Shown here in pieces: positions 13,201 to 56,921 of a stretch of 64,000 bases of DNA (position 1 is its first letter; every line of letters begins with the position of its first letter). The stretch lies in assembly GCA_965113315.1 (NCBI GenBank), contig OZ220365.1, one strand, 5' to 3'. A program made the translations under genes and the position numbers. Source of the stretch: Podarcis vaucheri (Eukaryota). The notes beneath the pieces were generated by a model, which made no database searches, was not told the origin of the DNA, and saw nothing but the letters and a program-made list of their open reading frames with translations.

Positions 13201-16200
13201 TGAACAGAACAAACAGCAAAACCTGATTGCCATTTGTTCCCTTTAGCACTAAAGGGCGGGTTTTCCAGGGGAAAGTGACAGGGCAAAGCTGCTTGGATCC
13301 ATGCTTTCCAGGCATGGAAACTGAATTAGCTAGGCAAGCAGAAAACTGCTTGGACCCGTGCTTTCTAGGCACAGGACAAGTATGGATGAGCCCTTACTTT
13401 GGGGGGGGGGTTATTGTTTCAGACTCAACATGGGAGTCCCAACAGGAGTTCTGTAAAGTTGTAACAGGACTGGCAGTGATCTTTGAAAGCATTTTATCTT
13501 AATGACTGTTGAGGGATTACTGCAAGCTTTACTTTTCATAGTGCATGTCGTTTATGTTTGTGATGTTTATAGTGGGACTAGTGATCATACTATCCTGGTT
13601 ACCTGTTTAGTTCCCCACCCTCAAGAATCCCTTGTTGTCAAGGGATTATTATTATTATCAAGGGGTTATTATTTTAGGCTGCAATACTATTATTTTCCAA
13701 GCTGGTGGTCTTCAATAAACTCATCAGCTAACAAGCTCCAATGAAGAATAATGTTTAATAAAACATCTCAAATTACGATAGGATGCATTTTCCTATAATA
13801 TAATGTTTCTCCTTGATTGAAATAACATCAACCAAAATCCTAGTTAGAAGCCACTCAAAGACACGGATTTTAATAACTTTTGTTTGTTTGTTTGTTTGTT
13901 TGTTTGTCTTCTGCAGGCAATCACATTGAGCAGCTTCAGTCAACTTACGTTAGTTCTCATCAGTTCCAGCAAATGTCTAAGGACTTTCAGGCCTGGTTGG
14001 AAAAAAAGAAGGAAGAACAGAATCAGCCTTGTCCCATCTCTACCAAGCTGGAGTCTCTGTGGACATTAATTGATGATCAGAAAGAGTTCAAGGCTGTCTT
14101 GTCTGACCAGACTGGTTCTTATGAAAAAATCATTGCAGAAGGTGAAAGTTTACTCCAGAAGACTCAGGGAGCGGAGAAGGCCGAGCTGCAGGCCCAACTG
14201 AACTTGCTCAGAGGTAACTGGGATGAAATGAACAAGCAAGTTAAAGAAAGGCAAGATAAATTAAACGATTGTTTGGAAAAAGCCCTTAGATACAGAGAGC
14301 ATGTAGAAAACCTACAACCCTGGATAGCGAAATGCCAAAGCAATATCTCTCAAATAGAAATGAGCATAGATCCTGCTCGGCTAGAGAATTCCATCGCTCA
14401 GGTGAAGAGCTGGCAGAAGGACCTAGACAAACACCAAGGGTTGGTGGAGCTATTAAGTAATGCAGCTGAAACATTACTCAGTGCCTGTCAGACAGACAAA
14501 GACATTATTGAAGAGGAGAAGGCGCTGCTGATCCAGAACATGGATATAGTCACAGAACAACTGCATGCTAAGAGAGATGGTCTGGAAAAGATGTCTCAGA
14601 GACTGAAAGAGTTTCAAGAGTCATCAAAGGATGTTGAAGAGCAGCTAAAGAATGCCAGAGAGCAGCTGGAAACACACGATTCTCTCAAACCCCAGACTTA
14701 CAGTAACAAACACTTGACGATTATGCAGGCTCAGCAGAAAACACTCCAGGCCATGAAGGCTCAAGTGGACCTTACAAAAAAGCTTGCCCAAGAACTGGTG
14801 GCAGATGCTTCAGATTCATCAGGTGTCTCTGACCTCTTGTTGCAGGCAGAAACATTAGAAGAAGAATTCAGCACCATCAGTCAGCAGGTTGAAGATAAAT
14901 GTTCATTCCTGGAGACTAAACTCCAGGGAATTGGCCATTTCCAAAACAGCATTCGAGAGATGTTTTCTCAGTTTGCAGAGTTTGACGATGAATTGGACAG
15001 TATGGATTCCGTGGGTAGGGATCTTGTCACACTGCAGTCACAGCGAAAGGATATAAAAACTTTCCTGAAAAAGTTGGAGGAACTCATAACCAGTAATGAA
15101 AATGCAAATAATACCTGCAAAATGATGCTCGCAAATGAAGCTGAAGCTTCTCCAGATCTTGCAGGTATAAAACGGGACTTGGAGGCTTTAAATAAGCAGT
15201 GCAACAAGTTGCTAGACAGAGCAAAAGCCAGAGATGAACAGATTGAAGGGACTATTAGCCGCGTTGAAGAGTTCTACAGTAAACTAAAGGGGTTTTCTAA
15301 ACTGCTTGGGGAAGTTGAAGAGCATGAAGAGTCCCAGGGTTCTGTTGGAATGGAAATTGAGACGATAAATCAGCAGCTGGATGTATTTAAGGTAAGAAGG
15401 ACCTTTCTGAGTTTTTAGAATTCTGTATTGTAAAATGAAAACTAACTGTAAGAATATTGTGACGTGAGCTCCTTAGTGGTCTAAACCCCCAAGGAAAATT
15501 CATTGGGTTGGCCCTCCTTTTTCAGCTTATAGATCATGTCTTGTAAACCAGTCAGTTTCTTAAGAATTGTGTTCAAAGTCATTTTTCATGTTTCCCAACA
15601 GAGGGTGCTTTTTGCCTATTTTAAGACGAGTGAGATCTAACATAACATACATTCCACTCAATGCATTCCCGTCTTGAGATCTAAAGCTTTATTAATAAGC
15701 AAGTTTTGTTTGTTTGTTTGTTTGTTTATGAATTCAAATGCCTCCTCTAATTTCAACGGAGAAACGGAATTGCTGCAAAATATTTACATCATAACATTTT
15801 TATTTGCCTTGTAATGAATAAGACGTGAGTTGTCCAACAGGAAGTGATATCACATGCTCCTTTGGTTTGGGGTCCTTGGAATTTACAAGTAATTTGCGGG
15901 TTGTGGTCTGAAGTTGTATGAAGTGTTCTCAGCTCAGTGTTCTCATGAAGCAATTTAGAAACTGAGAAGACGGTCTTCTCTTTGGTCAAAAGTTATTAGA
16001 GAAGCATTCTTAAGTTGTTTTAAAACAGAATGTCCTGCATTTTGCTTTGAAGATCTCCAGCAAAGCTGAGCTTCTTGGGTTCTCCTCTCCTCCCCTCTCC
16101 CACAGCTGTCATGATTAATGGTAATTTTTAAATGGTAATTTTTAAATGGTAATTTAGTGCAAATACACTAAATCATGGTTCTATTCAAGCACGCAGAAGG

Positions 16201-25200: not shown

Positions 25201-28200
25201 GGGGAAAGCTTCTTCTTTTATTATTATTATTACAACTCTGGATGTACCTTTGTTTTTCCTGAAGCCCTTCTCTGTGCCTTGGTTTCCACAGTCCACAGCT
25301 CTTCTGGTTTGTTTTTCTTCAAAAGCGTCCACAACATGGCTTATTTATAAAGGAGATGGAATTCTGCAAGCCATTTAAATGGATTACAGTTAATCTGTCA
25401 CCTCCTGAATATAGCGTGCTGCCTGCGATAATGCTGATTCATTTTGAAGACTTAATCTGGAGATTTAAGACACACATTTTGACCTAAAAATTGAAATGGA
25501 ATGCTATGTGGGAAGTTCTGAGTCTTTTGAGCCACTTAAAGATTTTCCTGGGGTTTGGGGGTTTGTACATTTTGTTGGTGTCTTTGTGCGTTGAGTTAGT
25601 ATTTTAAAATATTAAAAGGTGTGGGGTTTTTTTGTTTCCCCTCTCCCCACCCACCCCCTTAAGCTCAAGCACTTTATATTTTAGGGGTAGGGAGAGAAAT
25701 GTTTTAAATCACAGCCAGGTAAACTTACACAGATGCACTGATTACGACCTTAACCGCCTCATAAATTATTTCCTGTGTTTTAGTATGTAAGCATCTTTCT
25801 GCTGAGGGCAATTTTACTGTACTTTTTAAAAACTGCTTTTCTATTACTTTATTTTAATTTTTACTTTATGTGTGTTGCATGTCTCCAATAAGATAGCCTA
25901 GCAGCAGTGCTAGATCTGTTAATTCCTGCAGAAATGGGGAAGCCGCTGAGCAGGCCAGACTGTTTACGCCAGAATCCTCCTTGTGTAGGAAAAGGTGATG
26001 AAGAAGAAGAGGATATAAATATTGAGGACTGTTATGTTCCCCAGAGGTCAATCTATGACACAGTGCGGCTGAATGAACAGATTGACTCAGGTTCTAAAGG
26101 CAGCCTCTCCTCCAGGCATTTCTCAGATCGGACTTTGCCGTATAGTCATAGAACACTGGACCTTAGTACATTGTGCTCCAATGGTGCCCTCTCCTCCTCT
26201 AGTGTCTTTGAACTCAGAGGACGGGAAGCCAATAAGCTAGATGAAAAAATGATCTTTGATGCCCTTAAGCTGAACAATGACATCATTCGAACAGCTGGCT
26301 TGCCCAAAGCAAAGTATCACACAGAAAAGAAAGAACATAGGAGATCCTGGAGGATGCTTGTCCCACCAAATTTTGCAGACTATGCAAATAAAAGTGAGTG
26401 CTCACTTGCTGGGACTGTTGATGTGTCCGACTTAGCAGCAACAGGCCAGGTCAAATGTGGGACTAGTTCTCTAACTTCCGAAGAAGATGACTCTGGTCTG
26501 TGCAGTCCTCCAGCAGAAAGAGAAGAAAAACAAGATGTGCTAGAAGGGGAACAAACTCAATTTAGGAGCATATCTTCCATAGACGATAATCAGTTTGTAG
26601 GTAAATTTGGATCATTTTCTCCTACCATTTCTAGTAGTGAACATCAAATTTCATTGCTTACCTCCAGAAGTGCTCCTACCAGTGGACACTGTCGAGTAAA
26701 ATTGCAGAATGCTTCACATATAGAGCAAGAATCTTTCTGGAACTATGAGGGCAACCAAGGGGAAGGAGATGGACATTGCAGTCCACTGACATATTTGAAA
26801 GAAGACCTCTTAGCACATCCAGCATGGCTCCAGGATGGTGAGAGGGAACATGATTTCACTTTAGACAAAGAGGAAGTGAGGAACAGCGCTGAAGTTAATG
26901 AGCCATTAGACACCCAAGACAGGATGATTGAAAAGGACCTCCTGGATATTGCAACTCAGGATATAGATATTTATGATGATGATGATGCAGCTTTACATGC
27001 TAGTGATACGGACTTAGTAAAATATGTGATTTTGCATGAAACTGAGGAAAGTAATATGGCCCATACAAGTGCAATAGAATTGTCCTGTCAGGCTTTAGAG
27101 GCTAATAATACCACAAGCTGTCAAAAAGCAAATCCAATCAGCGCTGAATTCAGCTTTTGGACTACAGGCATGCAAATAGAACCTACCTTGGATACAGTGT
27201 GCAATGGCATGTTGTCTTATAAGGTAATTCCAAACTTAAATGCATTCTTTTCATGCTGCAGGGTGGGTTATTTGTTATTTGTTATTTTTTCTTCTGTAAT
27301 TGCATCATGAATGCTTATGTTTAGATTTTCCTAATCTACCCAAAGAGCTCCTTTAGAATCATTTGCCCAACAAGTTATTAGAAGGCAGAAATTGGCGAGA
27401 TGGTCACTTCAGTAAATTGATTAAGGGCAGTTTGTGACAGGGTTGATTGCTTCCAGCTGTTTGGTTGCATGGCTATTTATTGTCCAGATGGTGCCTGTTA
27501 CCCTTTATTTGGAATGCTTCCACTGGGCATTGATGTTCAGCACCCCCTCCATCCCTCCCCTCAAATTATGTTTCAAGCAGCCAATGCCATTCAAGGGCAG
27601 ATAGGCCTTCCCTATTCAGATTTAACCAGATTTCAGCTGCAGCCATATACTGTACACACTTTCATAGGAGTAAGGCCCATTAAACCCAATGGGCATGCTT
27701 CTTCTGAGCTGACAAGTATAGGATTGCACTGTTCATCATAAAGGTATACACAACGATGCTCAAATTTCTGCGGTTTCCAAAGTACACAGATTAAAGGCTT
27801 GTTGCACGTACTGAAATTATTTCCTTGCATCTTCATGCCAAAAAGTAGTCCTAAAGTTGTAGGGGATTTTTTACAAGAGATCTTGTAACATTTACTGAGC
27901 GGTGAATGAAGTAAGGAAGTAGAAAACAGCTTTGTAATAAGCATGGGGAGCTTGTGAAGTCTTTAATTTAATTTTGTTCTTTTTGTTTTTGGTCACTCTG
28001 ATCTGGTTGTGTCTTGAGTTATTTTAGGACTTGTTGCTAAGCTGTTCTGGCAAACTCTAGCCTCAATTCCTACTTTTGTGAGTGGGTATGTGTATCTAAA
28101 CAACAAATCAAGGGGAACAACTCGGTTTGGATTGCTATGGAATTGTCTTAAAAATATATCAACATCTGAAATAGAGGAGAGTTGGATTGAAGGACTGCGT

Positions 28201-31200: not shown

Positions 31201-34200
31201 ATTTTACTACTGATACCTGCTCTGGTCATCACTTATGCTCAGCATGTTCCAGACTTAATAATCTAAATGTGCCTTTGCCTTTCTTTCTTTCTTTTCCTTT
31301 TGATCTGAAGGTATTCGAGAAGGAAAAGATTGAACCACTGCAGGTTAAGCAACAGGAGGTAAATTGGTTGGGTCAAGGCCTTATTCAGAGTGCTGCTAAA
31401 AATGCTAGTACTGATAACCTTGAGCGCGATCTTGAGGATGTTAACACAAGATGGAAAACTCTCAACAAAAAGGTACGTTAGTTGTATTTGCACTGTTGTT
31501 TACCTTTCTAGTCTGCTGTTGTTTTTGTTTTGCTCTTATTTCTGATTTTCACTACAAAGTAGTACTACACATTATTGTAGTAGACTGCATAATAAAATGC
31601 ACAAAATCCCCAGTCCAGAACTCCATGTGTGCTCTGGTGCTTATGTAGAGCTCCTACAGAAGCAGACTACCCTTTGTCACATGGGTACCCTGTCATTTTA
31701 AGGTCCATGGAAAGAAACCTGTAGAAAGTCAAAAGCCTAAAGGAAATAGAGGATTGCAAAACATAATTCATGGTGCTTTCTGTGTCATGCTGATTGAAGC
31801 AAAATGCCTACTCAACTGTCTTCAGCCCTATTTAGGGAAGTTTTTAATAACTGATGCTTTAATGTATTTTTAATCTTTTGTTGGGAGCTGAGGAAACCCA
31901 GCCAGATGGGCGGGGTATAAATAAAAAATTAATATTATATTATATTAATGTCCAAATAAAGATGTGTGCATTCAAGAGGCACATGAAGTACTTAGGCTTC
32001 CCTGGGGATTATCCCTAGGCAGGTCTACCTCACACTTTGTGCACCTATGACCTGCTGGTACAAAATGTTGTATTGTTCATACCTGTATTAAGACAATTTT
32101 AAATATTTGCTGAAGTGCACAGAATGTCACTCAAGTCAGTGAAGAGCTTCATAGTTTAGGAGTTGCTAGCCTTAAATTGTTCTTATTTTCCCTAGGGGTT
32201 GTTTGATTGACTGGAAAGATGGAAAGAGGCATTGTGGGAAGAGGATAATATTTACAATGTTTTTTTGTTTGTTTGTTAGGTTGCTCAAAGAGCAGCTCAG
32301 TTGCAAGAGGCACTGCTCCACTGTGGGAGGTTTCAAGATGCTGTCGAATCTATCCTTAGCTGGCTTATTGACACAGAAGACCTTGTGGCTAATCAGAAGC
32401 CTCCATCTGCTGAGTTCAAAGTTGTGAAGGCCCAAATACAGGAACAGAAAGTGAGTGGAAGTTATTTATCTATCTTTAGATTAATTATATTTTCTCTGTC
32501 ACCTGCTCAGTGGGGTATTTTAAACTGTTTTTAAAGCTGTGTTTTAATTTTGTAACCCACCCGGGGCCTTAGAATGAATAGTGGGTAATTAATAACAGTA
32601 ATAACATGTGGTGGCCTGGATAACAGTGTGGCTGAGTATGTATTAGACATGCGCTATAAGAGGTGCAGTTGCAAAAGAACTTAAAAAAATACATCTCCAT
32701 AGTCTCTGTGATCCCATCACTTAGGATGGTTGTCATGGATGCTCCTGTGGGGGGATGTGTTTGGCTTTTTTCAGGGGAAGGGCAAATTTTCTCAACCCAA
32801 TCTGTGAAATTCTCTTTAAAGATTTGCCCTTTCCTACTTTCATTTTTGAATTCTCCACTCATTTTAACAGAGGCATCCAGACTGTAGCATATTAGTGGAT
32901 CTATTAGTCCTGCCTTTTACTTGTATGGCTCAGATTCAGCGGTAGACAGCGGGTTTTCCTGGGGGAAAGTGGCTAGGCAAGCGGAAGTGTGGGATGAGCC
33001 CTAAATTGCTTTGTTCATTCAATGAGAAAAGTGACCAAGAAATATAACAAATAGTTGGTATGTAAATTTATATCCATCTCTTCTTTCACCATGGAACTCA
33101 ATGGAGTTCCCAGGCAGCCTCCCATCCAGGCATTGATTGCATCCTTTGTCCGGGGAAATGTGGTTTTCTTCACTTCTTTGGGAAATGTGGGGAGCTGGTG
33201 CAGAATGGGGGGGGGGGAGCAGAGGCCATGTATAGCACAGAGTAAACAATCATTTCATTGGACCAGCTTTCTGTATATATTGCAAGGAAAACTCTGGAAT
33301 ATCTGTGCTGGTTCTTGGCATCATTTCATGCACGTGTACATTTCACTGGATGCACATCAAAAACAATTATTTCGAGGATCAAAAGCAATCTGATGTTTGA
33401 AAAGACATCACTGATATTGTGAAAAGGGGCAGGGGGAAGAACATTGTAGAGCTACTCCCTTAAGTTGAAATAAAGTTCAAAATTTTGTCAGGGCTTCAAT
33501 CCTCCTTCATCATTTTGACAACCCTCCACCCCACCCCTTCTCAGCTAATCTCTTTTTCCCATATATGCCATTCAGTGTGGACATATACGAGTTGCCTATA
33601 CATATGGGTTAGTAAGGGATGAAATCTGTGCCTGGTGTCAGCTTCTGCTCCACCCCTTACTTCCTGACTTCTGTCCTTATAGAGTTTTGTAGAGTCTGTT
33701 TTGATTTAGGGTAACATCTTGTTGTGCCTGTATCTTCAGTTAATAATGTCAAACACCCCTGCTTCAGATTGTTCAACAATTGTTTATAACACAGTTGCTG
33801 ATGGATTGTTAGACCCTCATTTAAAAGGGGTGGGGAAAGAAGGTTCATATTAAATATTGAATTGGCAGTTGTGGAGTAAATACAGCACATCAAACTCTGT
33901 AACCAGATCCATAATTACTTTCCTGTTCAAAATAAATGTATGAGCAAGGAAAGAGCAGGTCACAGCATGCACAGCATCAGAGAGAAGTTGTGCTCTCTGA
34001 GCAGTCTTAACAAAAGGCAGTAGGAGAGAGGAGGGGGGATTTTTGGCTGAAACATAGAAGGCAACCCTCAGGGAAGAGCACTGCATGAAGCTTAGTGAAT
34101 CAAGTCCTCAGGTTGTCTGGCCAAAGTGAGTATCCAAAGTTGCAGCTGCTCGCAACATAAGAATCTCCGAAATGATCATATGTTTGTACTGAAAATTTGG

Positions 34201-37200
34201 GACACAATCCAGAGAAAGTTATAACATGTTTGATTCCCCATTAAAATAATTTGGTCTTAGGAACATCATTAAGCCCTGAATTGTGTTCATCTTATTGAAT
34301 GCGGCCACAAGTGTTTTGAAAGGTGAGCACTATATAAACAAACAGATATTTCTCTGGATTGCAGTGGATAGTTGCAAACATCAACAGTGTATGAAAAGAT
34401 GGGGAGGGTTCTTATGTGAAGCGGAAAATTTCCTATCTTTTCTTTTTCCAAAATGGAAAAGCTTCCCCAAAAGTTCCCAGCACTGTCATGTGTTATAAAA
34501 TGTCCCAATGTGATTCCCCCCTCTTCCTGCACATGTCAACATCATACCTCATATAAGGCATATATATCTGTAGCCCTTCCAGAGGCTTCCAGGATAGCAT
34601 TGAAAAGAAATCTGAATGAAAACATTTGGAAGGATGCTAGACCTTTACAACCGATGCTAAGATTGGCACAGTTTGCTCGCTCTCATAATGAAATTACTTA
34701 TTTATGCAATTTATGGCACTTGCATTGTAAGACTGCTGGCACCCTCACAATTTCCTGCCATCTCAGAAAATTGTTCCCTTAAGCCTGCCTCTTTTTGCCA
34801 GTAAACAAGACCTTGAAGAATCTGCCTCTTAATCTTTTTACAGCCTTGTAGTGAACAGTCATTTCCTGGCAATTTGATTTTTGATTATTTTGTCTCCAGC
34901 TTCTCCAGAGATTGCTGGATGACCGCAGACCCACTGTTGAACTAATCAAGCGTGAAGGGGAGAAAATTGCAGAGTCAGCAGAGCCCGCTGATAAAGAGAA
35001 GATCTTGAAACAGCTGAGCCTCCTGGATAGCAGATGGGATGCACTGCTTGATAAAGCAGAAACAAGGTACCTGAAATGTTTGCATTCACTTAGGGGTACA
35101 GTAGGGTGTACTCCTTGATACAGCATTAGAAACTAATTTGAAACTATAGCAACATTTTCATCCAGTTAACTGTAAGATTCGCATTTGAAGCTAAATGAGA
35201 AAATGGCTCTGAGTATATTACAAGTTTTAGAAATTTCAGTGAAATAATATGGGGAAATCAGTATCACATAATCACCCGTTCTTGTAGTAAAGTGGATGTC
35301 TCCCATAATCTTCCAATTATGGGAACTACTTTTAGGTGTAGTTCAGAGATTTTCGAAGTAATACAGTGAACATAATTAAACCGAAGTAGTTCTTTCCAAG
35401 CGCTGATTTTAACTTTTTAGTATTTCATACATCCCTCATCCCGCAAAATGTGCTTTGTTTTCACATATTGTAGGAATCATCAGTTGGAAGGTATCTCAGC
35501 TGTAGCACAGCAATTCCATGAAACTTTAGAACCACTGGTTGAGTGGCTAACCATCACTGAAAAGAGGCTTTCAAATTCAGAACCCATTGGAACACAGGCT
35601 TCCAAACTACAACAGCAGATTTCTCAACATAAAGTAAGATCTTAATGTGCCTTTCATTGCGGCAATTATTTTATGATTTATAAATCAAAAGTGGAGTATT
35701 CCGCCCAACACATTTTTTTATTACTTTGTTTATATTCTTCTTTTACCATCAAAGTTATATTCTTTTGGTTGTTCTTGAGTTGTTTTCATATTTGGTTTTA
35801 TGGTTTCTTTTGTTTGCTTCTTTTTCTTTTCTTTTTCTTACTACTTTGAAAACTTCATTTAGGCCTTTGAGGAAGACATCGCCACGCGCAACAAAAATTT
35901 GGAGCAAGCTATTAATATTGGTCAGGCTTTAAAGGCACTGAGCTCCAAGGAAGACAAGGAAATGGTGCAGGAGAAACTAGATTCTTCAGAAGCCCAATAC
36001 ACTGAGATTCGAGAGAAAAGTGGCAGTAGGGCTCAGCTTCTACAGCAAGCCTATTGCAATGCTCAGATTTTTGGAGAGGATGAAGTTGAATTGATGAATT
36101 GGCTGAATGAAGTACATGAGAAACTGAGCAAACTGGCAGTCCAAGACTACAATACTGACTTGCTTGTGAAACAACAAACTGAAATGCTGGTATTTCCATT
36201 TATTTTCTGTTGATTTTATTTTACCATTTTAAGCACTATTTCATATTACTTCTCATTTTTTTATTGTTATAGTCGTTTAATTCTGTATCCTGATCATTTA
36301 TTTTTAAGCCTTTATCCTCCCCGCACCCTGCTCCAATTCTCACTCTGAGAGAATAAGTGGGTGCTTATAGACTTTCAGCTTTATAGATTGTAAATGATGA
36401 CTTCTCTGATGTAAAAGCTTCTGAAATTTTCTAGGCTCTCCAAGAAGAGATTCTGCTCAGAAAGCAAAATGTTGATCAGGCTATACAAAATGGTTTGGAG
36501 CTTCTCAAACAAACAACAGGTGAGAAAGCCATGAGGAAATTAATGATTTATGACAACAAAGACAAGTAAAGTAGAAACTTTTGGGGGCTCATTGACTCCT
36601 ACTGGAACCTTTTTAAAGCTCATTTAAAAAAACCTTTTTTGTTCATAAGTAATGGGATAAGTTTAAAATTATGGGTGCAGTGTCTAATAAAGTTTCACAG
36701 TGTAATACTATACCTGTCCGCTCAGAGGTAAGCATGACTGAGCTCAGCAGGGCTTACTCCCAGGTATGTGAAAAGAAAGCAGTAATGAGAGTTGGTGTAG
36801 CATAGTGGTTGAGAGCATGAGCTGGGAGTCCTCAGTTCAAATTTAGCCACAGCCATGAACTTCCTAGGTGACATTAGGCAAACCATTAACTCAGTCTCAG
36901 CCTTCCTGCTGTAATATTCTACTGGTCTACTGTGCAGAGCTATTGGGAAAATTTAGAGCTGATAGGAAATTTCTCAGAAGAGAATTTCTTAACAGATGTT
37001 TGAACAGTTGGAGAATTTCACTCTACTGCTGGGGAATATATGGTGAAATAGCCTTTCAGATTTCATCCTCTTTGAATTTTGAGCACACACTGGATCCAGT
37101 TTTAATATTGTTGTGGGGAGCAATAGACTTGACCTCTACTCCTTCCCATTCTCCTCTCTTACTCCATTAGTTCCATGTGTTGTTTCTGTTGGGGAGAGAG

Positions 37201-40200
37201 AAGGCCTTATCCTTTATGGAAATAGCATATAGATCATTTCTTTGGCTCTGGAAATTATTTCTCTTATTCGCATTCCAGGTCTCATCACGAAATGTTGTTC
37301 TGCTAGGGACAAGACCCCCAAATTTTGGGGAGCCTTAGGGTTCAGGGATTTGTAAATGAAGTACAGTGGAGGGTGGTAAAGAAGCTTCTTAAATAGTACA
37401 GTATTCAGTTGAAGGGACGCGGGTGGCGCTGTGGGTTAAACCACAGAGCCTAGGACTTGCTGATCAGAAGGTCTGCGGTTCGAATCCCTGCGATGGGGTG
37501 AGCTCCCGTTTCTTGGTCCCTGCTCCTGCCAGCCTAGCAGTTCGAAAGCACATCAAAGTGCAAGTAGATAAATGGGTACCGCTCCGGCGGGAAGGTAAAC
37601 GACGTTTCCATGCGCTGCTCTGGTTCGCCAGAAGCGGCTTAGTCATGCTGGCCACATGACCCGGAAGCTGTACGCTGGCTCCCTCAGCCAATAAAGCAAG
37701 ATGAGCGCCCCAACCCCAGGGTCAGCCGCGACTGGACCTAATGGTCAGGGGTGCCTTTACCTTTACCTATTCAGTTGAAACTCTTGAAAACAAGGGTGTG
37801 ATCACTCACCCCTAACTTGAATATGCATGGTTCTGGGAGAATTTGATTATAGTATGAATAGTTCCTTATTTTTTGAGTAGCACTTCAGCATTTTAAAGCA
37901 GTTTGTAATATGTGGTATCCTGATGCATGTCCATTTGGATCTCAGCCAGTAGATGTAAGGAAGGAGTAAATAGACTGCTTAAACAGCTATATAGAAGAAT
38001 GTTGTAGTAAATGTTAAAAAAGAGTGGGTTTTTTTAAAAAATGGACTGAGTAATAAGTCTACCTATTGCTGTGAGAGAGGCTGTTTCCCCCACAGTGGAC
38101 CTAGTACTGTGGGAAAGTTGCATTCCAATTGCACACAGCATGTCTGGCTTGTAGACCAACATCTTCTAAATTTTCCAGTCTCTAACTCCATGAACTCTCC
38201 AAGATATACATAGTTTGGGGCTGGGAAGAAGGGAGGGAGGAGAGAAGGAGATGAATTACAGAATTAGAACAGGAATTGTTCACTGAAAGGTAAACATATG
38301 GTATAACGAACAGTGCAGTTTCAATTCTGACTTTTACTCTCTGTAGAACGGCAATTGCATGGACATAGCCACTCAAAGAGGAAAATGTTCTTAATTGTAA
38401 TTAGCGCTGTCAGTTGATTCATTACCTGCCTTATTTTAATGGATTTAATTTAATTAAATACCACAAAATCTCAATATTTGTGTAATTTCATGTATATTGG
38501 AGAAAAGACATAGTTGGTTGTTGTTTTAAAGATATAGTCAAATAAAGTTGCCATGCGGTGTTAGAAGGAAAGGCCATCTATCTGCTCCTTAGTCTGGAAT
38601 GCTATCACATTATTCCCATATTCAGAGAGACCAATTCTGAACTTCAGAGCAAGAAACACCCTGAGCCATGAATAGTGAGCTCTGCCTACCATACTGCCTG
38701 TCACCTACTCAGAAGTCATTAGGGCTCCTAGCTTCTACTGATGACTTAATTGGCGTGAGCCAGTGCATAGAACAGGGATAGGGAGTCCAGATGTTGTTGG
38801 ACTCCCGTCTCCCATCAGAGCCGACCAATAATCATGCAAAGATGGGAGTTGTAGTCCAACAACATCTGGATGGCCACAGGTTCCTCGTCCCTGACCTAGA
38901 GAATCCTGATTGGCTGAGGCTTGACCTGGATTTATTTGGGTGGAGCCCAATCTAAAATAAGATGGGGTGGGCTAAAGTTGCATGTGCACAGCGAAGCTTC
39001 CATGCTTAGAAGAAAAACTAGCTTAATCAGGATGAAATATTTGTTCTATTTTCACCTGTGGACTTAAACACTAAAAACATCCTGGTCGCTTTAGATGATT
39101 TGTGTGTTAAATACCCCTTTCACATTGCAGGTGATGAAGTTGTCATAATTCAGGATAAATTGGAAGGCATTAAAACAAGGTACACGGACATAACTAAGCT
39201 GAGTTCTGATGTGTCCAAGACTTTAGAACAGGCTCTACAGCTTTCTGGTCAGCTGCAGTCAGCTCATGAGAAACTCTGCACTTGGCTGGATAAAGTTGAG
39301 GTGGAATTACAGTCGTACGAAGCGCAGGTCCCCAAAGGTGAAGAGTTAAGTCAAGCGCAAGAAAGACAAAAGGTGAGCGTAAAATGCTGTGTTTGCTTGT
39401 GGACAGCGTTCCAGGGGCCACTTGCCAGCAGCAAAGATGGGTGGAGCAACGGGCGTGACACTTCCCTTTGTACAGCTACACAGAAGTTGGGACGTTTTTG
39501 CATATATTCACACCTCGTGCACATCCCTTCACCCTTCATCCAGCTAAGCAAGAAGCGTTAACGTATTTCAAGAATGCATTTCAGAGTAGGGGAGGGAGGT
39601 GGAGAGAGAGAGATGGGGTATTGTTCTTTTGCACTATCATATTTTATTAGTTTAGAGGTTTGTGTCAGCATCATGTAGGTAGGTCCTTTGTTTATTTATT
39701 TATTTATATTGATAGTGTGAGTGGTTAGGGGGTCCCAAGCGTGCTTGTAACAAAAGCAAAGGTAGCCAAGTTGAAAAGAGTGATATTTATAGCTTTGGCT
39801 TGCAGCTGTAGCATTTCAGCTATGTACTCTTAAACTCAATAAACAAAACTGAAGATGGGAGAAGGAGAAAACCAAAAAAGCCCCATGAGCTGTGCAGATT
39901 TTGTTTCTGCGCCAATGTGTTATTTTTAATTTGTTTACCTTAAATATTCATTTTTAGGCACTGAAAAAAGAAGCAAAAGATAATAAAAGTTTACTGGACA
40001 CTCTTAACGAAGTCAGCAGTGCTTTGCTTGAACTGGTGCCATGGAGAGCAAGGGAAGGGATAGACAAAATGATCACAGAAGACAACGAACGGTACAGATT
40101 AGTGAGCGACACTATAACTCAGAAAGTGGAAGAAATTGATGCTGCCATTTTCAGATCGCAGCAGGTAAAAATGACCATAATTCTCATTTCAGTCTATGCG

Positions 40201-43200
40201 TGATAGGGGGAAAAAATATGTATATTTATCTGTTCAAGGAATACATCCAGGTGTATATCTGGGAATCCGTACCAAAAGAAAAGGCTGCTGTTCATATTAT
40301 TGGCACATGCATGCTACGTCTTTGCAAGAACTGGGGCCAAACTTGAAAAGAGCTTGGTCATAGTTGTCAGACATGAGTCCTAGACCAAAGCAAATCCAGT
40401 CATTGTTGTAGCCATCTGTCTTCTAGTTGACACAGAAATTACAGATCAGTCTCATACTGAGAGGCATTACGAGTGGCATCATGCAGTGATCTCAGTGGGA
40501 ATTTCAGTACAGAAAGAATTGTAAACTCAAACCCTGTAACTTATTATTTATGCTGCTATGTAGGTCATATATCAGCTTGTGTAAATGAATGGTTGAAGTA
40601 AAGATGTGTACAGTAGCCAGTGGATGCAGTTTTGCAGGAAATATAAACATTATTTGCAGTTGTGGGCAGCATTAAAATGAGCTTAATATACACATCAGTG
40701 TTTTGTTCGGAGGTTTTCTTTTTCTTTTTTAGAGCTTCTAATTTGTTGGCCCTTTAATTTAGTATGACTCAGTTTATATGCCTCTCTTTCAAAACAGAAT
40801 GTTCAGGCCAAAAGTACCTTCTCTGATTATAAATGTGAGATGACAGCAAATGTTTGTGGCTTGTTTCAAATAGATTAAACAGTGCGATAAAGAATTACTC
40901 ATGAAAAACATGGAGAAACCTCAGCCCACGTAACTTGCTTTTCAGTCATGATTCATAATTAAAGAATAAGATATGACAGCTTATCCATTAAATTTCACCT
41001 TCAGTTGGAAGTGACTCTGTCACCACAAACATGTAAATTATCAACTTTCTCAAGCAGCTTAATAGGATTATTTCTTGTTCAACCAGCATATGTTGAAAGC
41101 ATCAGACATAATGAAGAATTTTGATGACCTCTAAAGGTCGCATGTGCTCCCACCATCATGAGTGGGTCCAATAAAAGTTATCCTCCATATCAGTTTCTCT
41201 ACCTCTTTCTTTTAGGAACATGATTCACGTTGAAACTTGTTGTGTATATTTATTTGTCTGCTTAAACTAGACCATTCAAATATTGTGCTTCACGAGCATA
41301 CCAATTGCTCTACAGTAGCCTTCTCTAACTTGGTGCCCTCAATATAATTTGGACTCCAGATCGCAGCAGCCCCAGTCAGTATGACCAGTGATGGAAACTG
41401 TATTTTAAAGCGTTTGGAAAGAACCAGGATGGGGAAGGCTCTCAAAGTTCTCCAAAGCTCTCGAGTTCAATTGAGAACTGGTCTGGTGAGCCCAGGGGAA
41501 GAAACAAAGTTGAGGGTGGAACATTTGCATATGACAGCAGTGCCTAGTGGGATAACAGACCCTGGCTTCCCTTCCCCTGCGCCATCCACATGTTGAAAGG
41601 GAAGGTCTGAAATGAGGAGTCTGCTTTGTGTGTAGGCTCTGTCTCTGTCAGAACCCTTTGTGATCAGGGTGCTAATCTAGGTTCATACAGCGGGCTCTCC
41701 CTTCTTTAGAACCTTCCCCCAGAGTGTGGAAGTCAGGGTACCGCCAGTAGTATTGTCATGGTGTTGGGAAGCTCAGTGGGCACAAACTTGCTCTCTTCTC
41801 CCATGCATGTTCGGAAAATGACATTTGAAAGAATCCACTAGTAGTCTCTGAAAGGGTAAGATTTTCAGGGGGGAAATATGTGTATGCTATAGATACTCAA
41901 GACTTGCGTTCGCACAACTGGACTGTCAACATCTACCAAGAAGCAATTCCTATTTTGCTGCCCATTGATTTTAATGCCATTGATCTAGCCTAACTAAAAA
42001 ATAATCTCTCTATTGAGGCAGGGAAATAATCCTAAAGATGGACAAGAGCAAGAGATGTTTAAAGAAAAGCAAGTATTAATATTACCTTTGATGTTTGTGA
42101 GAATTTTGACAGAGAATTCCGGTTGAAGTATAAAGTATAATGTGGCTCTGACATTTCCTGCTTCCTCTTTGTAACACTTCTGAAATAAGCTGATTTTGAT
42201 ATACTCCTCAGTGTCACAGAGAGCCCTAGAATTTAATAAAATAAGAACAAACTGTGTGGTTATTATAAGAAGCTGCATTATATTCAATCACAGCAACGAG
42301 CCACCTAGCCTCACATTCTTAACTACTAGCACTGATTCCAGGATGCTGTGCTGCTGACCTGAAAGTCATTATTCTTCAACAAAATAACTTCAAAGGGAAA
42401 CTTTAGTCAGCAGCTGCTGGTTTTTTTCTCCTATTTCATTAAATTATCACAGCAAAGGGAGGAAAATTATATCGTTGCCTATACCGGTAATTTGTGAATG
42501 ATCACTGTGTTTATTTCGTATATTTTTGAGCTTAGCAAAGAGACATCACACTTGCTATTCAAAGATATTTGGCCCACTGCTTACAATCTTTACCTTTCTG
42601 ACTCTGTATGTGTTTGACCAATGCCACAGAAGCATGTTGCACTATTCTGCCTTGCCTCACCTGTCCCTTTAAGAATACCCAGATTTCTCTCATCCTCCAT
42701 CATATCTCTTAAGTGAAGAGGCCACATCTCCTCTTCCAGGTCTAAATGCACAAACTGGAAAGCTTATGGTCTAGCAGGGAAGTTAACAGGCACTATCTTG
42801 TTGCCATTGACACCTTGATCGCTTCATCCTCTATCCCCTCCCGAAGGTGTTGCAACACACATTCTTAGCTATGTGCAACTCCCTTAGCATTGCAACTTAA
42901 AATACCCACCATTCTAGAACTGGCCTAGAGGCAGCTTTGCAATTGAGGGTTATACTTGTTCAGATATCCAAAATATAAACAGGTTCTCATAAACTTGGGG
43001 CTGTGTAAATGTAACCAGTGCAGTCTTACCACTGAGCTATGATCCACACCTCTGAATCTTATCAGATGTATTTTCTGAAATATCTTTTCCATTTAAACCC
43101 TCTATGCATCCAATTGGAGTTATTTTTTTATTAATTGCTTTTTTATTTTTTCTGTATTTTCTTTAGTTTGATCAAGCAGCCGACACTGAATTAGCCTGGG

Positions 43201-46200
43201 TTGAGGAAACAGAAAATAAACTGATGTCTCTGGGTGACATTAGGCTTGAACGTGACCAGACCATTGCTCAGCTACAAGTTCAAAAGGTGAACAAATGTGA
43301 TTCCATCTGTAATGCAATAATTAATGGCCATTACTTTTTCTGCCATGATTTAATTTTCAAACCATTATAGTGCAGGCTTTTGCTCTATGTCCTCATATTC
43401 CTAATACCAGAGTATTGTATTATGTAATTAGGCATTTACCATGGAGATTTTGAAACACAAGGATACAATAGAAGAGCTTGTTGCATCTGGGGATGAAATT
43501 ATGAAGACATGCACGGAAGAGGACAAACAAACCATGAAGGTAATGGAGCATGATTTGCACTTGCTTACCAATAACTTTGAAAATCTGCATGCGTAAGGGA
43601 TTCCTAAGCCATGTTGCTGGAGCCCACTAAGATTATGTAAGAGGGGCTGAAATGTGCCTTGAAAGTTTAAGCTGCCTCAAGTTGGCTGCATCATGCAGCA
43701 CGTGGTTAAACTATGGAACTTGCTCCCACAGGAGGCAGTGATGGCCTCTAACTTACATGGCTTTAAAAGAGGATTAGACAAATTCATAAAGCTATCAATG
43801 GCTATTAGCCACAATAGCTATGCTCTGCGCAGTTGGAGTCAGTGATGCTTCTGAATACCAGTTACTGGAAACCAGAGGAGGGAAAAGTGCTCTTGTGCTT
43901 GAATCTTGCATGCTGGTTTTCCACAGGTCATTGTGAGAACGGGATGGGGGACTAGATGGACCATTGGCCTGATCCAGCAGGTTCTTAAAACTTACTTGAA
44001 ATGCCTGTTGAAATTTTAAAAGGCCTTCAGTATACACTCAAAATTCAACAGGAAAGAGGGCCTGCCTGATATCAACCGCGGGGGAGTTCCATAGAATTGG
44101 ACCCGGAATGCTGAATCCACAACTCCTTGGGGGATACGCCTCCCCCAAGCACCTGCCTACTTGCCCCCTAAAGGACTAAAAGATTGCCCACCCTGTTATA
44201 TAGCAAGACTAGTCACCTGCCACAATGGTAATCTTGTAAATGTCTCCAACCAAAATATAAATGCTGGTGTTTGTTGGTAATTTCTTTAATAGAAGAAGCT
44301 GGAAGGCCTCTTGCAGAAGTATAATACACTCTGTCAAATGAACTCTAAGAGGAACCTGCAGCTAGAAAGAGCTCAGTCTCTAGCCAGTCAGTTCTGGGAG
44401 ACTTATGAAGAGATTTGGCCATGGCTAACAGAAACACAAACAGTAATATCACAGCTTCCAGCACCAGCTCTTGAATATGAAACCCTAAAGCAACAACAAG
44501 AAGAGCACCGGGTAAGTTTGCAGTTGTCTTACAAAATGCTGTTAATTCCAAAGGTCAAAAGAAGTGCAGCCCTCTCTTTAGCATGTCATATTCACCAAAC
44601 CAACCAATACTTATCAGATTTTACATATTTTTTACTCTCTGTTAAAAACAACAACCCAAAATTCATTTTATTATGAAACAAACATTTTCTATTTTAATAT
44701 AAACACAAGTTTGAGTTTATTCTCAAGGCAGAGCAATCATTGTGAAAAGTGGATTAGTGAATTAGTGGCCTAACTCTGAACAAATTATTTACATTTTTTT
44801 TAAACGAATGAGAATGTTCAACAGTATCCAAAATAGCTGGAATGCAAAGCAAGCTGTGGTGTTCCCTAAGGAAAAAAAAAATCAAAAATCCAAAGTTGGG
44901 AAACACCTTAATTTGGACCAGCCAAAGTATCACAATCTTTTGAGTTCTCCAGAACTCTTAGTCAGGATGTTATGTAAAGCAGAGAATGGGGAAAAGGGGG
45001 CGGGGGACAGCAACAAACAACAAATATGGTTGTGGCCACTACGTCTGCATTTTGATTCAGCTTTAAGAGAGATTGCATGCTGGATTGGACTAGGTGCTGC
45101 AGACTCAGTGTGTACCCAGGATTTTGGGGAAAGAGGTGATGGCTGACCCCCAATTTTGGAAGCATAAAGTCCAGCAGTTAGTCAGTTCTGCCTCCAGCCT
45201 TAACAAAAGACAGAGGTTCCTGATTAGGCAGAGTGCAGCAATAAAGAGAAACATGGCTGTCTTCATATTAGCAAAGTTGGAGATTAATTATAGAGAGTGT
45301 TCTGGGTAGAAAAACCAGCTAAAGCTTCATTGAGTAGTAGTGAAGGCATACTGAATACAACAGAAACTGGAGACAAACAAAAGAATAAGTACCCAGAAGC
45401 ACCTTCTTAAAGGGAACTTTAAAACTATAACAGTTTGTTCTGTTAAGTTATGCTTTAAATGTGCAACAGTGCGTTGCTTCCATTTTAATGCACAACATTT
45501 TCTACGAGTCTCAAAAATATTGGATGATCTTAATATGATTCCGTCACGTAACCTTGGAGGTTTGATTTGCTTGCTTTTGTTACAGCACTCGAGCACTAGC
45601 GAGCTATTTATAATCATATTTAAACAATTTGGCATCTTCTGGAATGCCATTACTTAATAAATCATTTAGAGTGCCGGACAACTGGCTGAATACTTTTGAC
45701 TAGTTATATTGTTTTGCTTCCCAGATTCTGTTCTTTTAAATATCTTGGTAGACTAAAATGCTGTTTTTCTAGTATAAAGGAAACATTATATGCTTAGAGC
45801 TGAAAACACAACACTAAGGCTAAATGGATATATCCAGTATGAGTTATACTTTGTCTTAGCATGCAGCTGGGATTGTTTATTTAGACCACCTTGCCAGCTG
45901 AACGTGTTGGACGCACAGACAGCTGGAATGTGGCGATGTAAGGGTTAGATACTGATAAGTGTTTTGCTTTGCTATAGCAACTGCGAGAGTTGATTGCTGA
46001 ACACAAGCCTCATATAGATAAGATGAATAAAACTGGACCTCAGCTTCTGGAACTGAGCCCGCGAGAAGGTTTTTCAATCCAAGAGAAGTATGTAGCAGCT
46101 GATGCCCTTTATAGTCGAATTAAAGAAGATGTCAAAAAGCGAGCTCAGGCACTGGACGAAGCCATTTCTCAGTCTACCCAGGTAACATTATTTATTAGAA

Positions 46201-49200
46201 GAGCAATTAGATTCCAACTGCAGGATGTTGTTATCTTAAATCAATAGACTCTAGGTACATAGTGGACTTGCCAAGACACTACGTCACCAAATCATTGCAC
46301 ATAAATTTGCTCTTCCTATCTGTTAAAGAATTAAGGGCATTGTATGTTGGTGAATCAAACCTTCCCCCTGTGCCATCAAGTTCCTTGAAGGAAAGGCATA
46401 ATTAAAAAATGGAAATATTCTTATCCTATTTGGGAATTACAGAATTGTTTTTCCCTGAATAATAAAGCCAGTATCCTACATAATAGTGATTTGTTCATGC
46501 ATGCACACAATCAAAGAGGCTAATTGGTGTCAAGACAGCCCAGGGTTTCTCCTGGTGTCTTTGCCAAAAATAGTGGTGGTGGGACAGTGACTGACTGTTG
46601 GTCAGACTTGGCATGAAGCAACTTCCAACTTTCCAATGTAATGCTACTGCATTATAGTTTTCTGACCCTACCTACTTAGGAGCTAGATCAGGGGTCTGCA
46701 ACCTTTAAGACAAAAAGAGCCACTTGGACCTGTTTCCGAAGAAAAAAAACTGGGAGCCGCAAAACTCGTCATTATAAAAATAACATTTTTGTCACTTTTT
46801 TATTATTTCTTTGTTTGACCCCTCAGAATTACTCCTCCTCATAGAAATAAACGTTAAATTAACAAGTTACCTTTTTGTGTGTGTGTGTTCTTCACTCCCC
46901 TTCAAAACAGTGACCAGCGTACATGCCCCCTTTCAATGCAGTGACCAGCGTACATGCCCCTTACAATGTAGCGGGCAGGTGGGCGGGAAGGTGACGTCGG
47001 GACGGTGCGTGACTAACGCACGCACCGCCCCCATGCGACGTCACAGCCAGTACAGCGCCCGCCACAGTGGGGAGTGTTGGGGCGCACAATGCGCCTCCTT
47101 CCCTCGCTAGTATCCGCCCCGGAGCCGCGGCAAAGGTGTAAAAGAGCCACATGCGGCTCCGGAGCCGCGGGTTGCAGATCCCTGAGCTAGATGCTTACAT
47201 TCATACGATGTCTATTAATCACTGCCGCATAATGTTAACAGTAATTAACCAATGCAGTAGGATATTTATTGGATAAAACTTATTAATAATGTGAATTGCT
47301 GACATTTTTAAACGAAATAACACATTGTGGCAAAGGATAGGTGAAAGAAAAAATGTGTTATTTCCTCTGTGTTATAAAACCATGTTCAGGAAACTATTAA
47401 TACATAGTATTAATACATGGTGATGATGAGACAGATAACAATTGGTCTGTACTGTAAAGCTGCCTAGTTCACTAACAAACAGATATTATTTGGACATTTT
47501 GATTGGGAAACATAAATTTTGCTTAAACTAAGATCATAAATCTGTTGAGAAAGACAAAAAGTCACAAAAATAGTTAAGGATGCTTTAAGCATGTTCATTC
47601 AGCTATAACTGGTTTTTTTTTTCTGGTTTGACCCAATTCCTTTTAAATGTTGCTAATAATCTGTCACTCACCCAGTCTTCTCTCCCTCCTCCCCATTTGT
47701 CTGCATAGTTCCATGACAAGATAGATTCGACCACTGAGAGCCTAGAACGCATTGTTGAACGTTTGAGGCAACCGCCTTCCATCTCAGCTGAGGTTGAGAA
47801 GATTAAAGAACAGATCGGTGAAAATAAGAACGTGTCTGTCGACCTTGAAAAACTTCAGCCAGTCTATGAAACCCTCAAGCAGCGCGGGGAGGAGATGATT
47901 GCCCGTTCAGAAGGCGCTGATAAGGACATATCTGCTAAAGGTAGACTTCAGAATTTTACATTTCAAAATAAATGCATGAACAAGTTTCCACAAGCAGAAC
48001 TTTATATACCTGCCCGTGTATATTTTGCTTCCTAGTGGTTCAGGATAAGTTGGATCAAATGGTCTTTATGTGGGAAGACATCCATACCCTGGCTGAAGAA
48101 AGGGAGGCCAAATTGCTTGATGCAATGGAATTAGCAGAGAAGTTCTGGTGTGATCACATGGCTCTCATAGCCACTATTAAGGATACTCAGGATTTTATCA
48201 GAGAACTAGAAGGAGCTGGAATTGATCCTTCAGTGGTAAAGCAACAGCAAGAAGCAGCAGAGGTAGGTGAAATTTAACTGTTGGGCTTAGACTACCGTCC
48301 TGCTCCCATATATTTCTTAGCAATCATGTATAAGCATGTTAGTGGTTTGGACTATATTGTTATGCTATGTTTAGTGGAAATTCCTTTACAAATCATCATG
48401 GCTGGTTCAGATGTAACAGGAAACCATTGTTTCCAGCTATGTGAATGAGCCACACTGAGCCGCCTCCTCCCATCTCCAGTACAAAGCTCTCCACAGTTCA
48501 TTCACATTGTGGGAACTCCTAATTACCCATTATATATGGACAGGACTAGATATAGAGTCCAACACCATCTGTGCGGATTTATTTTGCTTCTTTAAGAAAC
48601 AAAAATCCCTGTGTGTAACAAATGCATGGCTACAGGTAATCATGGCCTGCATTTTTTTGCCTTCCTGCACTAGTCAGTAATGCCCTTTTTTCTCTTCAGA
48701 GTCTATGCATTGCTGAATGAAAAGACTTGCATGGGGGAAAATGCATTTGAAGTAATAATGAAAGGTGATGGCTGTGTTCTACCTCCAATGTCAAAGGCAG
48801 TTTGCCTCTGAATATCAGCTCCTGGGAATCACAAGTGCTGTTGTGCACAGGTCCTTCTTGCGGGCATCTGATTAACCACTGTGAGAACATGATGCTGGAC
48901 TAGATAAGCCTTTGGCCTCAACCCGGCAGGACTCAGCGTTCTTTCTGATGACTATTGTGCCCTTATAAGCCATCTAATGATGATTCGAGCATTGGGCCAG
49001 ATTCAGTTTGCTAATGGAAGCCAGCACAAAGATTTCTGCTAGCTCAATAGAGATTTCCCCCTGTTCTTCCCCCTTCACCTCTCTCGAATCTGCTCTGGAG
49101 GGTCAGGGGAACCCCCAGAACAGCATGGAGAAGGAGGAAAAAGGAGATAGTTGCATCTGACAAGCAGAAATTCCTTTGCTGATGGGTTATTGGCATAGTG

Positions 49201-51653: not shown

Positions 51654-51727
<74 letters not shown>

Positions 51728-54700: not shown

Positions 54701-56890
54701 TTCACAGTTATGCACATATTGGACAAGCATGAAACAGTTGTTGCCTGTAATACTTACAATTTTATTCAGTAGCAAATATACAGTACTTAGTGGCATTCAC
54801 AGATCAATTATTATTATGTTGCACCTACTATGAGGCTATGCTATAGCATTACTTGGACTACTATTTCACCTGATGTTCTTATTCTTATTCAATATGTTTA
54901 CAGGCCCTATTTGACTGGGTGGATATCGCTGGTAGTAAATTAGCTGCGATGTCACCAGTTGGAACAGACCTAGAAACAGTAAAACAACAGACAGAAGAAA
55001 TGAAGGTATGAAACAGTAGCTTCTTATGGATGTACAACTTTCTGTTAGTGTTAGTGTTCCAAATCACTTTGCATTCAGTCTGTAACAAAAAGTAAATTAT
55101 TTTTGTATGGGCATGTTGTTTAAAAATCTACAGCCTTTCTGAGTCTGAAAGTAATATGACATCAGTTTCCTCTCCGAGTTAATTGTGGATTTTTTTCAAG
55201 AGCGGTTATTTTTTCATCACTGCGTCAATTCCTTTTATGAGACCCAGCTTCCCTTTTAGAATGTGCACAAGTTCCTGCAAAGCCTGTCATTCTTCATACC
55301 ATGGATTAGTCCTAAACATTCATAGATCTCTTCATTTCCACCGCAGCCCACTGGACTATAAAGCAAAATCCCCAGCCAACTCTAAAAGCAATATTTGGAA
55401 TGGAAATATGACTCATTCTTTTCATAATACCTGGATGCTGCTGTGTGCTTTGCACAGGAAGCAGAGATGGTATAGGATATCCTGTTTTAGGGCACAGGAT
55501 TAGACTGGATGAATCCACTCCAGCCCTGTTATTGTATGTGCAAAGCAGGGCTTCAGTATGTTGGGAAATTAAACAGGAAATTTAACAGCCAATATTTAAG
55601 CCCTGTCTCTCAGCAGGGGTTGGAGATTGAAAATTAGGGTTAAGAAATTACTTCTAAAAATGAAAGCGGGGATTAAGAGATCATCAAAACAGGGCAGAGT
55701 GGTGATAGTGATGCATCACCTTGACCCATGGGTATACAGTAACAGGGGTGAGGGGGAAGCCCTTCTACATTTCTCACTTCTCTCTTATTGAATCAGTGTG
55801 TATCTTTGGTAAAAGATGTTAGTCTGGATAGGGAATAGGATTTTGTGAATGGGTCACAGCAGGGAGGCTTCAGAGAGTGTTGGCTGGCCGCCCAATGACT
55901 TGCAGAGTGTGCTGAGGGCAGAAAGAAGTTATAGATGAATCCTTCTGCCTTGAATCTTCAACAAGCTTTGGGTGTGCAAAGGATTCCCTTCCTCTTCTCT
56001 GTCTGGCTCATCTAGTTTTGCATAGCTGTTCTTGGTTTGTGGGTCCCTGTACTTAACAGGTTTAACAGCCTTCTCAATAAGCATGTTTTTAAAGCTCTGA
56101 AGAAATGCCTTTTGACAAAAGAGAAAGCATTTGTTAACATCAACCACTGACATTCAAAACTCATGATATAGAGTTTGTCTTTTTCACAACCAAAATTAAT
56201 ATCAGATGAAAAAAATTCTCCGTTGGGTGGTTTTTCTTCCTCCATGCTTTTTGCAAACACTGTAGGGATATTTTGAATAAGGATGTATTATGGACATGTC
56301 CACATGGCTATCTGCCTTGAGCTCCATGCTGCTGTGTGCATTTGGAAACCGGGATATGACCCCTGGAACGGCTGTTGCCATTTCCTCTAAGGCTAGCAAC
56401 ATTCCTCCAGCAACAGAAATTCTGTGTATCCCATAAGTCATGCAGTTGGTGGGGAAACTAATGTCGCTAAAGCCTCGAGCACATTCTCACATTGGTGATT
56501 GGTTGCTGAAGTGTCTTTCTTCCACATCTCTGCATTTATTTATAATTACATCTAATTCAGAAATGTAATGATGTTAACAAAAGGCATGCCCAGAACTGTG
56601 ACTCATGTAAAAATACAAGGGGTAGACGCTTCTGGATTCAGCTAATTTATTTATTACATTGATTAGTTACTCCATAACCACATGAGTGTCAAACAATTAA
56701 AAGAATTTAAAGTATAAATCCAATAAAACATGAAATAAAACCACCAAAAATTGTAGAGAACAACAGCCATGTCAGAGCAGACTGGGTCAACAGTCAGGGA
56801 AATATAAGAACGAACAAGAGAGAGCCACAAAATATTGCTGTATAGGTAAAACTATACTCTAACCCTCAATGAATGCCGACATTAATATCT

Positions 56891-56921
<31 letters not shown>

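Follow-up and report, generated by a model that had tools for sequence, protein, structure and literature searches.

A probable alternative first coding exon for a short dystonin in the distal rod of DST in Podarcis vaucheri

We describe an open reading frame (ORF) of 430 codons at positions 25934-27223 of a 64,000-nucleotide (nt) stretch of the genome of the lizard Podarcis vaucheri (GenBank assembly GCA_965113315.1, contig OZ220365.1; the window), which lies within an intron of the distal rod of the dystonin gene, DST. This lizard ORF is very probably orthologous to a conserved alternative first coding exon from which a short dystonin is made. Translation would start at an invariant Met-Gly, and the phase-0 donor at 27223 would be spliced to the spectrin exon at 31311; a skip of that 162-nt exon to the following one would also keep the frame. 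By orthology, the product would be a dystonin of ~2,400-2,700 amino acids (aa), composed of a mostly disordered 430-aa head, the distal spectrin repeats, an EF-hand pair, a GAS2/GAR microtubule-binding domain, and a C-terminal tail, and would be without the calponin-homology (CH) actin-binding domain and the plakin domain. For this lizard, both the 27223 to 31311 splice and the same short product are what we infer from the genomic sequence and its homologues. Existing annotation of many vertebrates already contains both the exon and its short isoform, and the reading is correct rather than new.

Anatomy, conservation, and genomic setting of the exon

The ATG (25934-25936) lies in the context cag-a-a-ATG-G, with a G at both -3 (25931) and +4 (25937), and the exon end reads ...ATG TTG TCT TAT AAG^GTAATT (the caret marks an exon boundary here and below), with the last in-frame codon AAG at 27221-27223. 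The rod exon upstream ends in phase 0 at 15391 (..GAT GTA TTT AAG^gtaaga) and is followed by an intron of 15,919 nt (15392-31310), after which the next rod exon is entered in phase 0 at 31310^31311 (..ctgaag^GTATTCGAGAAGGAAAAG) and opens GTA TTC GAG AAG GAA AAG. Six AGs between the upstream in-frame TAA and the ATG end at 25896, 25901, 25904, 25907, 25913, and 25931, and none of the exon starts that they would define (25897, 25902, 25905, 25908, 25914, and 25932) falls on a codon boundary of the ORF. Because no phase-0 entry is present between the TAA and the ATG, and the donor at 15391 is in phase 0, the ORF is not possible as an in-frame cassette. All of this upholds a preliminary description of the window made from the letters alone, which had claimed a 430-codon ORF in a 15.9-kb intron between two DST rod exons, a strong Kozak context with an in-frame TAA 45 nt upstream, the lack of a phase-0 AG entry after the 15391 donor, and an AAG^GTAATT donor in frame with the acceptor at 31311.

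A word-indexed search of proteins of similar length identified ~195 homologues of the 430-aa ORF at E<=0.001, including proteins from Elgaria (80% identity), Pogona, Candoia, Laticauda, a turtle, birds, elephant, opossum, naked mole-rat, whale shark, and Astyanax. HMMER, run exhaustively over 1.84 billion cluster representatives, matched 48 clusters at 50% identity, a hagfish protein among them. The exon is 73.9% identical to the N-terminus of a Phrynosoma platyrhinos 'Dystonin' model (P0281). The window contains only two ORFs longer than 200 aa, this one and that of the large rod exon (13880-15418). Stops make up ~6% of random codons by our own estimate, so a 430-codon open frame, which is moreover conserved in the ~195 proteins, is not a chance event.

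Across 75 DST-type sequences, a single residue accounts for at least 97% of the column at 129 of the 430 positions, which are concentrated at residues 1-140 and 176-199. No Pfam family, including CH and plakin, is matched by the 430-aa product. An AlphaFold2 model built on a 53-sequence alignment has a mean pLDDT (predicted local distance difference test) of 47.6 and contains just two short confident helices, and a query of the ESM Atlas with residues 1-200 gave no match above 0.76. The model suggests that the head is mostly disordered and that its two conserved helices are docking motifs rather than parts of a folded domain.

The 3′ boundary of the exon is also marked in the alignment. Residue 430 is Q, K, or E (a NAG codon) in all 75 DST-type sequences; four of these are spliced models, and the 71 others, which read through the boundary, all continue with VI, VT, or VM, corresponding to GTNA[T/C]. 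Past the donor, the mean conservation per column declines steeply (0.75, then 0.43, 0.19, and 0.12), and the read-through tails are between 2 and 167 aa long. Such an abrupt loss of conservation at a GT that is itself conserved looks like a used 5′ splice site, unlike a conserved C-terminus.

The flanking exons place the window in the distal rod of DST. The upstream exon matches 'dystonin-like [Pterocles gutturalis]' (72% identity, 100% coverage), a JGI 'dystonin', and 'Dystonin [Manis pentadactyla]', and downstream of the 31311 exon are 17 blocks collinear with residues 484-1528 of the Phrynosoma 'Dystonin' (68-98% identity; the block limits are tblastn ranges and not exact exon boundaries). 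The same downstream exons are only 35-79% identical to a catfish MACF1 model, and the assignment to DST over MACF1 follows from these two comparisons. The window stops short of the end of the rod, near residue 1528 of P0281. The features are listed in Table 1.

Table 1. Features of the DST window (coordinates in the 64,000-nt stretch).
Feature	Coordinates	Strand	Basis or remarks
Upstream DST rod exon ('exon 11' of the preliminary description), spectrin repeats	13925..15391	+	Translation and dystonin-named homologues; start approximate
In-frame TAA, 45 nt upstream of the ATG	25889..25891	+	Sequence
Candidate 3′ splice site, ..tctgttaattcctgcag^AA ATG	25915..25931	+	Pyrimidine-rich tract, cag^AA; phase 1 relative to the ORF
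Probable alternative first coding exon of DST	25934..27223	+	430 codons, ATG to phase-0 donor; sequence and ~195 homologues
Invariant N-terminus, 20 residues	25934..25993	+	G2/S6/R7 and C10/C17 pattern resembles N-myristoylation and palmitoylation signals
Highly conserved block, residues 1-140	25934..26353	+	Conservation profile, 75 DST-type sequences
Predicted helix, residues 40-51	26051-26086	+	AlphaFold2 model
Predicted helix, residues 104-113	26243-26272	+	AlphaFold2 model
Second conserved block, residues 176-199	26459..26530	+	Conservation profile, 75 DST-type sequences
TLDTVCNG motif, residues 418-425, just before the donor	27185..27208	+	Conservation profile and models
5′ splice site GTAATT	27224..27229	+	NAG^GTNA[T/C] conserved across amniotes
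Unconserved read-through tail, 28 codons and stop	27224..27310	+	Would close a 458-aa stand-alone product if the intron were retained
Next rod exon ('exon 12' of the preliminary description), putative joining partner	31311..31472	+	162 nt, phase 0 to 0, starts VFEKEK; sequence and orthologous junctions
17 further blocks matching DST rod exons	32280..63077	+	Local tblastn against Phrynosoma platyrhinos P0281

Short dystonin models and the MACF1 counterpart

Long proteins that begin with the exon were sought using the N-terminal 200 residues of the catfish MACF1 model (P0143; 3,242 aa) as the query. Dozens of models of 2,100-2,700 aa that are named dystonin at their source begin with the alternative exon. 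They include those of Phrynosoma platyrhinos (P0281; 2,428 aa) and the eagle Haliaeetus albicilla ('PREDICTED: dystonin-like', P0290; 2,687 aa), and a model of the snake Pseudonaja textilis that is unnamed in UniRef (P0304; 2,613 aa) has the same architecture. Others are from Rhinolophus (P0289), pig ('Dystonin isoform 1eA', P0291), Pipistrellus, Suricata, Ursus, Castor, Balaenoptera, two turtles, and several teleosts; the blue whale model carries both the alternative exon and its junction with the rod. All 14 of the long models that were read begin with the N-terminus of the exon, and 12 of them contain the join ..CNG..(K/Q)^VF(E/Q)KEEIEPLQ.. (eight of them exactly, and four with the donor moved slightly); a motif search across the 14 did not find it in two catfish models. 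The exact junction occurs in the models of Phrynosoma, Pseudonaja, Haliaeetus, Suricata, Rhinolophus, pig, blue whale, and Pipistrellus, and also in proteins of Laticauda (P0010) and Heterocephalus (P0048). Pfam searches with the Phrynosoma and eagle proteins return 11-15 spectrin repeats, an EF-hand pair, and GAS2.

Three Logan clusters (P0292, P0296, and P0300; possibly mammalian, and cited from the match table only) encode proteins of 2,636-2,690 aa with the N-terminus of the exon on contigs of 9,093-10,073 nt. Since the exons of the window measure 100-330 nt and are separated by kilobase-scale introns, an unbroken ORF of ~8 kb on contigs of 9-10 kb could arise only from spliced RNA.

In a 'dystonin-like' protein of Limosa lapponica baueri (P0013), the 162-nt exon is left out in frame and the alternative exon is joined to the exon beyond it (..SNK^VAQRAAQLQ..), which could be either a real variant or a model error. 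The contig listed for P0178, an orthologue of the upstream rod exon, matches that of P0013 in length (23,517 nt).

The annotated short dystonins (P0281, P0304, P0290, P0289, and P0291) are orthologues of the product proposed here, with an identical junction and a collinear rod (68-98%), and they differ from it in nothing essential, the window simply being from another species. The classical isoforms (DST-a/BPAG1a, DST-b, and DST-e, with type 1, 2, or 3 N-termini) derive from the same gene, and DST-a and DST-b share the same distal rod, EF-hand, and GAR tail. However, they start upstream of the CH or plakin domains, whereas the short product would start mid-rod and have neither.

At the other end of the protein, the head resembles that of a second spectraplakin. 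BLASTP against the hyaena 'uncharacterized protein KIAA0754 homolog' (P0127; 1,383 aa) gives 52% identity over residues 1-170 (E 3e-50), and the boa orthologue and coelacanth and fish proteins carry the NCBI name 'MACF1, isoforms 6/7-like'. In the catfish MACF1 model (P0143), a gecko MACF1-type protein (P0285), and a hagfish protein (P0142; junction ..^VLAFQKGKVEALQTAVQAVNWQGQALVQSAP..), the corresponding exon runs into the paralogue of the 31311 exon, and in P0143 it is followed by 13 Pfam spectrin repeats, an EF-hand pair, and GAS2. These comparisons support the window exon as a paralogue of the KIAA0754 exon of MACF1 ('MACF1 isoforms 6/7'). Both have the invariant N-terminus and conserved blocks over residues 1-170, both are placed directly upstream of a paralogous VF.KE..(E/D)P.Q spectrin exon, and in both the downstream spectrin repeats, EF-hand, and GAS2 follow. 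The MACF1 exon differs in its host gene and in its size, ~950-1,400 aa versus ~430 aa in DST, and nothing recognisable is held in common past about residue 170. A module and position common to DST, MACF1, and the hagfish spectraplakin fit an origin of the exon before the DST/MACF1 duplication.

A third and more divergent group of teleost proteins (P0154, P0156-P0158, P0161, and P0162; named 'si:ch73-305o9.3' or 'daf-12-interacting protein 1-like') has the same head and lengths of 660-1,600 aa. Pfam identified no spectrin repeat or other domain in P0154, P0157, P0158, P0161, or P0162, and the group may be a gene in its own right, or else an exon that belongs to another spectraplakin paralogue and has been left unjoined.

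The preliminary description had proposed most of this picture. The similarity to KIAA0754 that it named is confirmed by the BLASTP match, with every block that it listed found, including RRSW..PPNF, and its paralogous alternative N-terminus at the same intron position in both genes is seen in the catfish, gecko, and hagfish models. The product that it predicted, lacking the CH and plakin domains and retaining the distal spectrin repeats and, presumably, the EF-hand/GAR tail, has the form of the lizard, snake, and eagle models, and it was right that this is not a classical BPAG1a/b/e isoform, as the ORF starts in a rod intron after an in-frame stop and has no CH or plakin match in Pfam. Its claim that the exon is 'hidden' does not hold, because short dystonin models with the exon are already public, lizards included.

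The exon may have been remarked on before. The legend to Fig. 1 of Voelzmann et al. 2017 (bioRxiv 10.1101/122010) refers to an additional exon common to dystonin and MACF1 that is a possible alternative start, and this is probably the exon of the window; the review offers no function or expression data. We found no functional paper on a KIAA0754-type exon, on FLJ26213, or on an internal promoter of dystonin in the literature searched.

The N-terminus and the upstream end of the exon

In 53 sequences comprising DST-type, MACF1-type, and third-group teleost proteins, residues M1, G2, K3, P4, L5, S6, P8, C10, and C17 are invariant. The hagfish protein P0142 starts MGKPLSKPDC, and its second cysteine is displaced by an insertion. 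Invariance of M1 and G2 in all of the paralogue groups argues that this is the true N-terminus, and that of the nine residues as a set in all three groups, with the similar hagfish start, speaks for a function of this extreme end of the protein.

The pattern raises the question of lipid attachment. Lysine at position 3 is atypical for the PROSITE myristoylation pattern; it occurs in the myristoylated hippocalcin and VILIP proteins. A precedent for N-terminal lipidation motifs exists within the same gene, as the type 3 leader of classical dystonin is reported in review text to have potential myristoylation or palmitoylation sites. From the sequence pattern, we put myristoylation together with palmitoylation of the invariant N-terminus at close to, and somewhat short of, an even chance. 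A lipid-anchored short isoform would tether membranes to microtubules without actin binding, and residues 30-58 and 102-114 would serve as short docking motifs. More tentatively still, Met-Gly-Lys-Pro-Leu-Ser...Cys10...Cys17 could be a dual lipid anchor, and the exon would then define an isoform class of its own, the third among spectraplakins and an ancient one, with members in DST, MACF1, and hagfish that act as actin-independent linkers of membranes and microtubules. The searched literature contained no paper linking KIAA0754 with myristoylation and no study characterising such a membrane-tethered isoform.

Whether 25934 marks the first exon or the first coding exon depends on the acceptor just upstream. 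An acceptor of fair quality, ttaattcctgcag^AA, precedes the ATG by 2 nt and, judged by its sequence, could take an upstream non-coding exon, which would make the ORF the first coding rather than the first exon. Two rodent models, from Neotoma lepida (P0149) and Myodes glareolus (P0123), share a GC-rich upstream exon (MPPGLGVLRGPAAL..PEPRRERPQ..) ahead of parts of the exon, and P0149 also splices out most of its variable middle; together they are a hint that mammals have an upstream exon and alternative splicing within this one. Two mammalian Logan ORFs (P0045 and P0077) have 13 more open codons with an in-frame Met (MSRAAIFVLTIYK and MSKAAIFVLTVYK, respectively) before MGKPLS. If these codons are transcribed and used in mammals, Gly2 would not be N-terminal there; in the lizard, the TAA closes that frame.

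The only CpG-rich patch in the intron is an element of ~370 nt (19205-19580) that looks like a transfer RNA-derived short interspersed element (SINE) (..ggttcgaatcccc..), with a copy of 'tatatcccacc' on either side. The window has further copies at 62205-62563 and 37414-37765, and the identities of these two are 86% and 78%. ARAGORN and Rfam made no call on the 19205-19580 element, and a scan for bacterial-type promoters and terminators, irrelevant to this DNA, was at chance level.

Elsewhere in the rod, three small exons (36438-36533, 43432-43539, and 50164-50283) are matched by the eagle protein P0290 and missing from the Phrynosoma short-dystonin model P0281; fish and hagfish models match ranges overlapping them. 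They are either alternative cassettes or omissions in the Phrynosoma model.

Alternative explanations and implications

Several observations weigh against a short dystonin that starts at this exon. Most of the long proteins that support it are automated gene models, some of them ab initio. The exon is held by 14 small assemblies (79-148 Mb, from five studies), none of which is recorded as RNA, and an RNA label for them is a guess. NCBI has separate 'uncharacterized protein LOC...' entries with a read-through tail in Elgaria, Pogona, Pogoniulus, and probably whale shark; the LOC model of elephant has a different end and is probably spliced elsewhere. No CpG-island promoter was found in the intron of the window, where the sole CpG-rich patch is the SINE-like repeat, and the proposed lipidation is a matter of sequence pattern only.

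The LOC entries, together with that from elephant, are 430-490 aa long and are what would be expected if the ORF were a stand-alone nested gene, with an unspliced or intron-terminated transcript encoding a disordered protein of ~458 aa without the spectrin rod, and if the long models were annotation artefacts. A 424-aa product of a human complementary DNA (FLJ26213; P0050) is also listed (it was read from the match table only and left out of the alignments), and the third teleost group has the same N-terminus with no detectable spectrin repeat. We nevertheless consider a stand-alone gene unlikely, as it does not account for tails that are unconserved in both sequence and length beside a donor, NAG^GTNA[T/C], that is kept in 71 of 71 sequences, nor for the TLDTVCNG motif abutting that donor. 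Contigs of 9-10 kb that encode 2,636-2,690-aa proteins with the N-terminus of the exon, and the same junction arising independently in DST, MACF1, and hagfish models, also speak against it. The two products need not exclude each other, and a minor intron-retaining transcript may give the 458-aa protein alongside the spliced form.

It is far less probable that the exon is a frame-breaking or 'poison' cassette, spliced after 15391 through the acceptor at 25931 and ending the long DST frame early. Neither the near-invariance of 129 amino-acid positions over vertebrate evolution, the initiator Met included, nor the open 430-codon frame in ~195 sequences would be explained, and no listed model joins 'exon 11' to the alternative exon. 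What the poison exon has in its favour is the plausible acceptor 2 nt before the ATG, with its pyrimidine-rich tract and cag^AA, and the outcome of using it, since entry at 25932 from a phase-0 donor reads AAA TGG GGA AGC CGC TGA and meets a stop within six codons. Least credible of all is an ORF that arose by chance or has decayed into a non-functional remnant in this lizard; the lack of a Pfam match agrees with it, but the frame is intact and 80% identical to Elgaria and ~74% to Phrynosoma, all invariant positions persist, and so do the start, the donor, and the acceptor downstream. The conservation data in practice refute it.

An alternative first coding exon of a short dystonin therefore stays the favoured reading of 25934-27223, and the preliminary description was right to infer it de novo from raw sequence, though the feature was already in public annotation. 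Its interest lies in how the spectraplakin genes are studied. Both the disease genetics of DST and MACF1 and the design of knock-outs take the a, b, and e isoforms as their reference. A short, conserved isoform beginning mid-rod would escape N-terminal mutations and gene traps and be hit by distal ones, and such escape could explain some isoform-dependent phenotypes.

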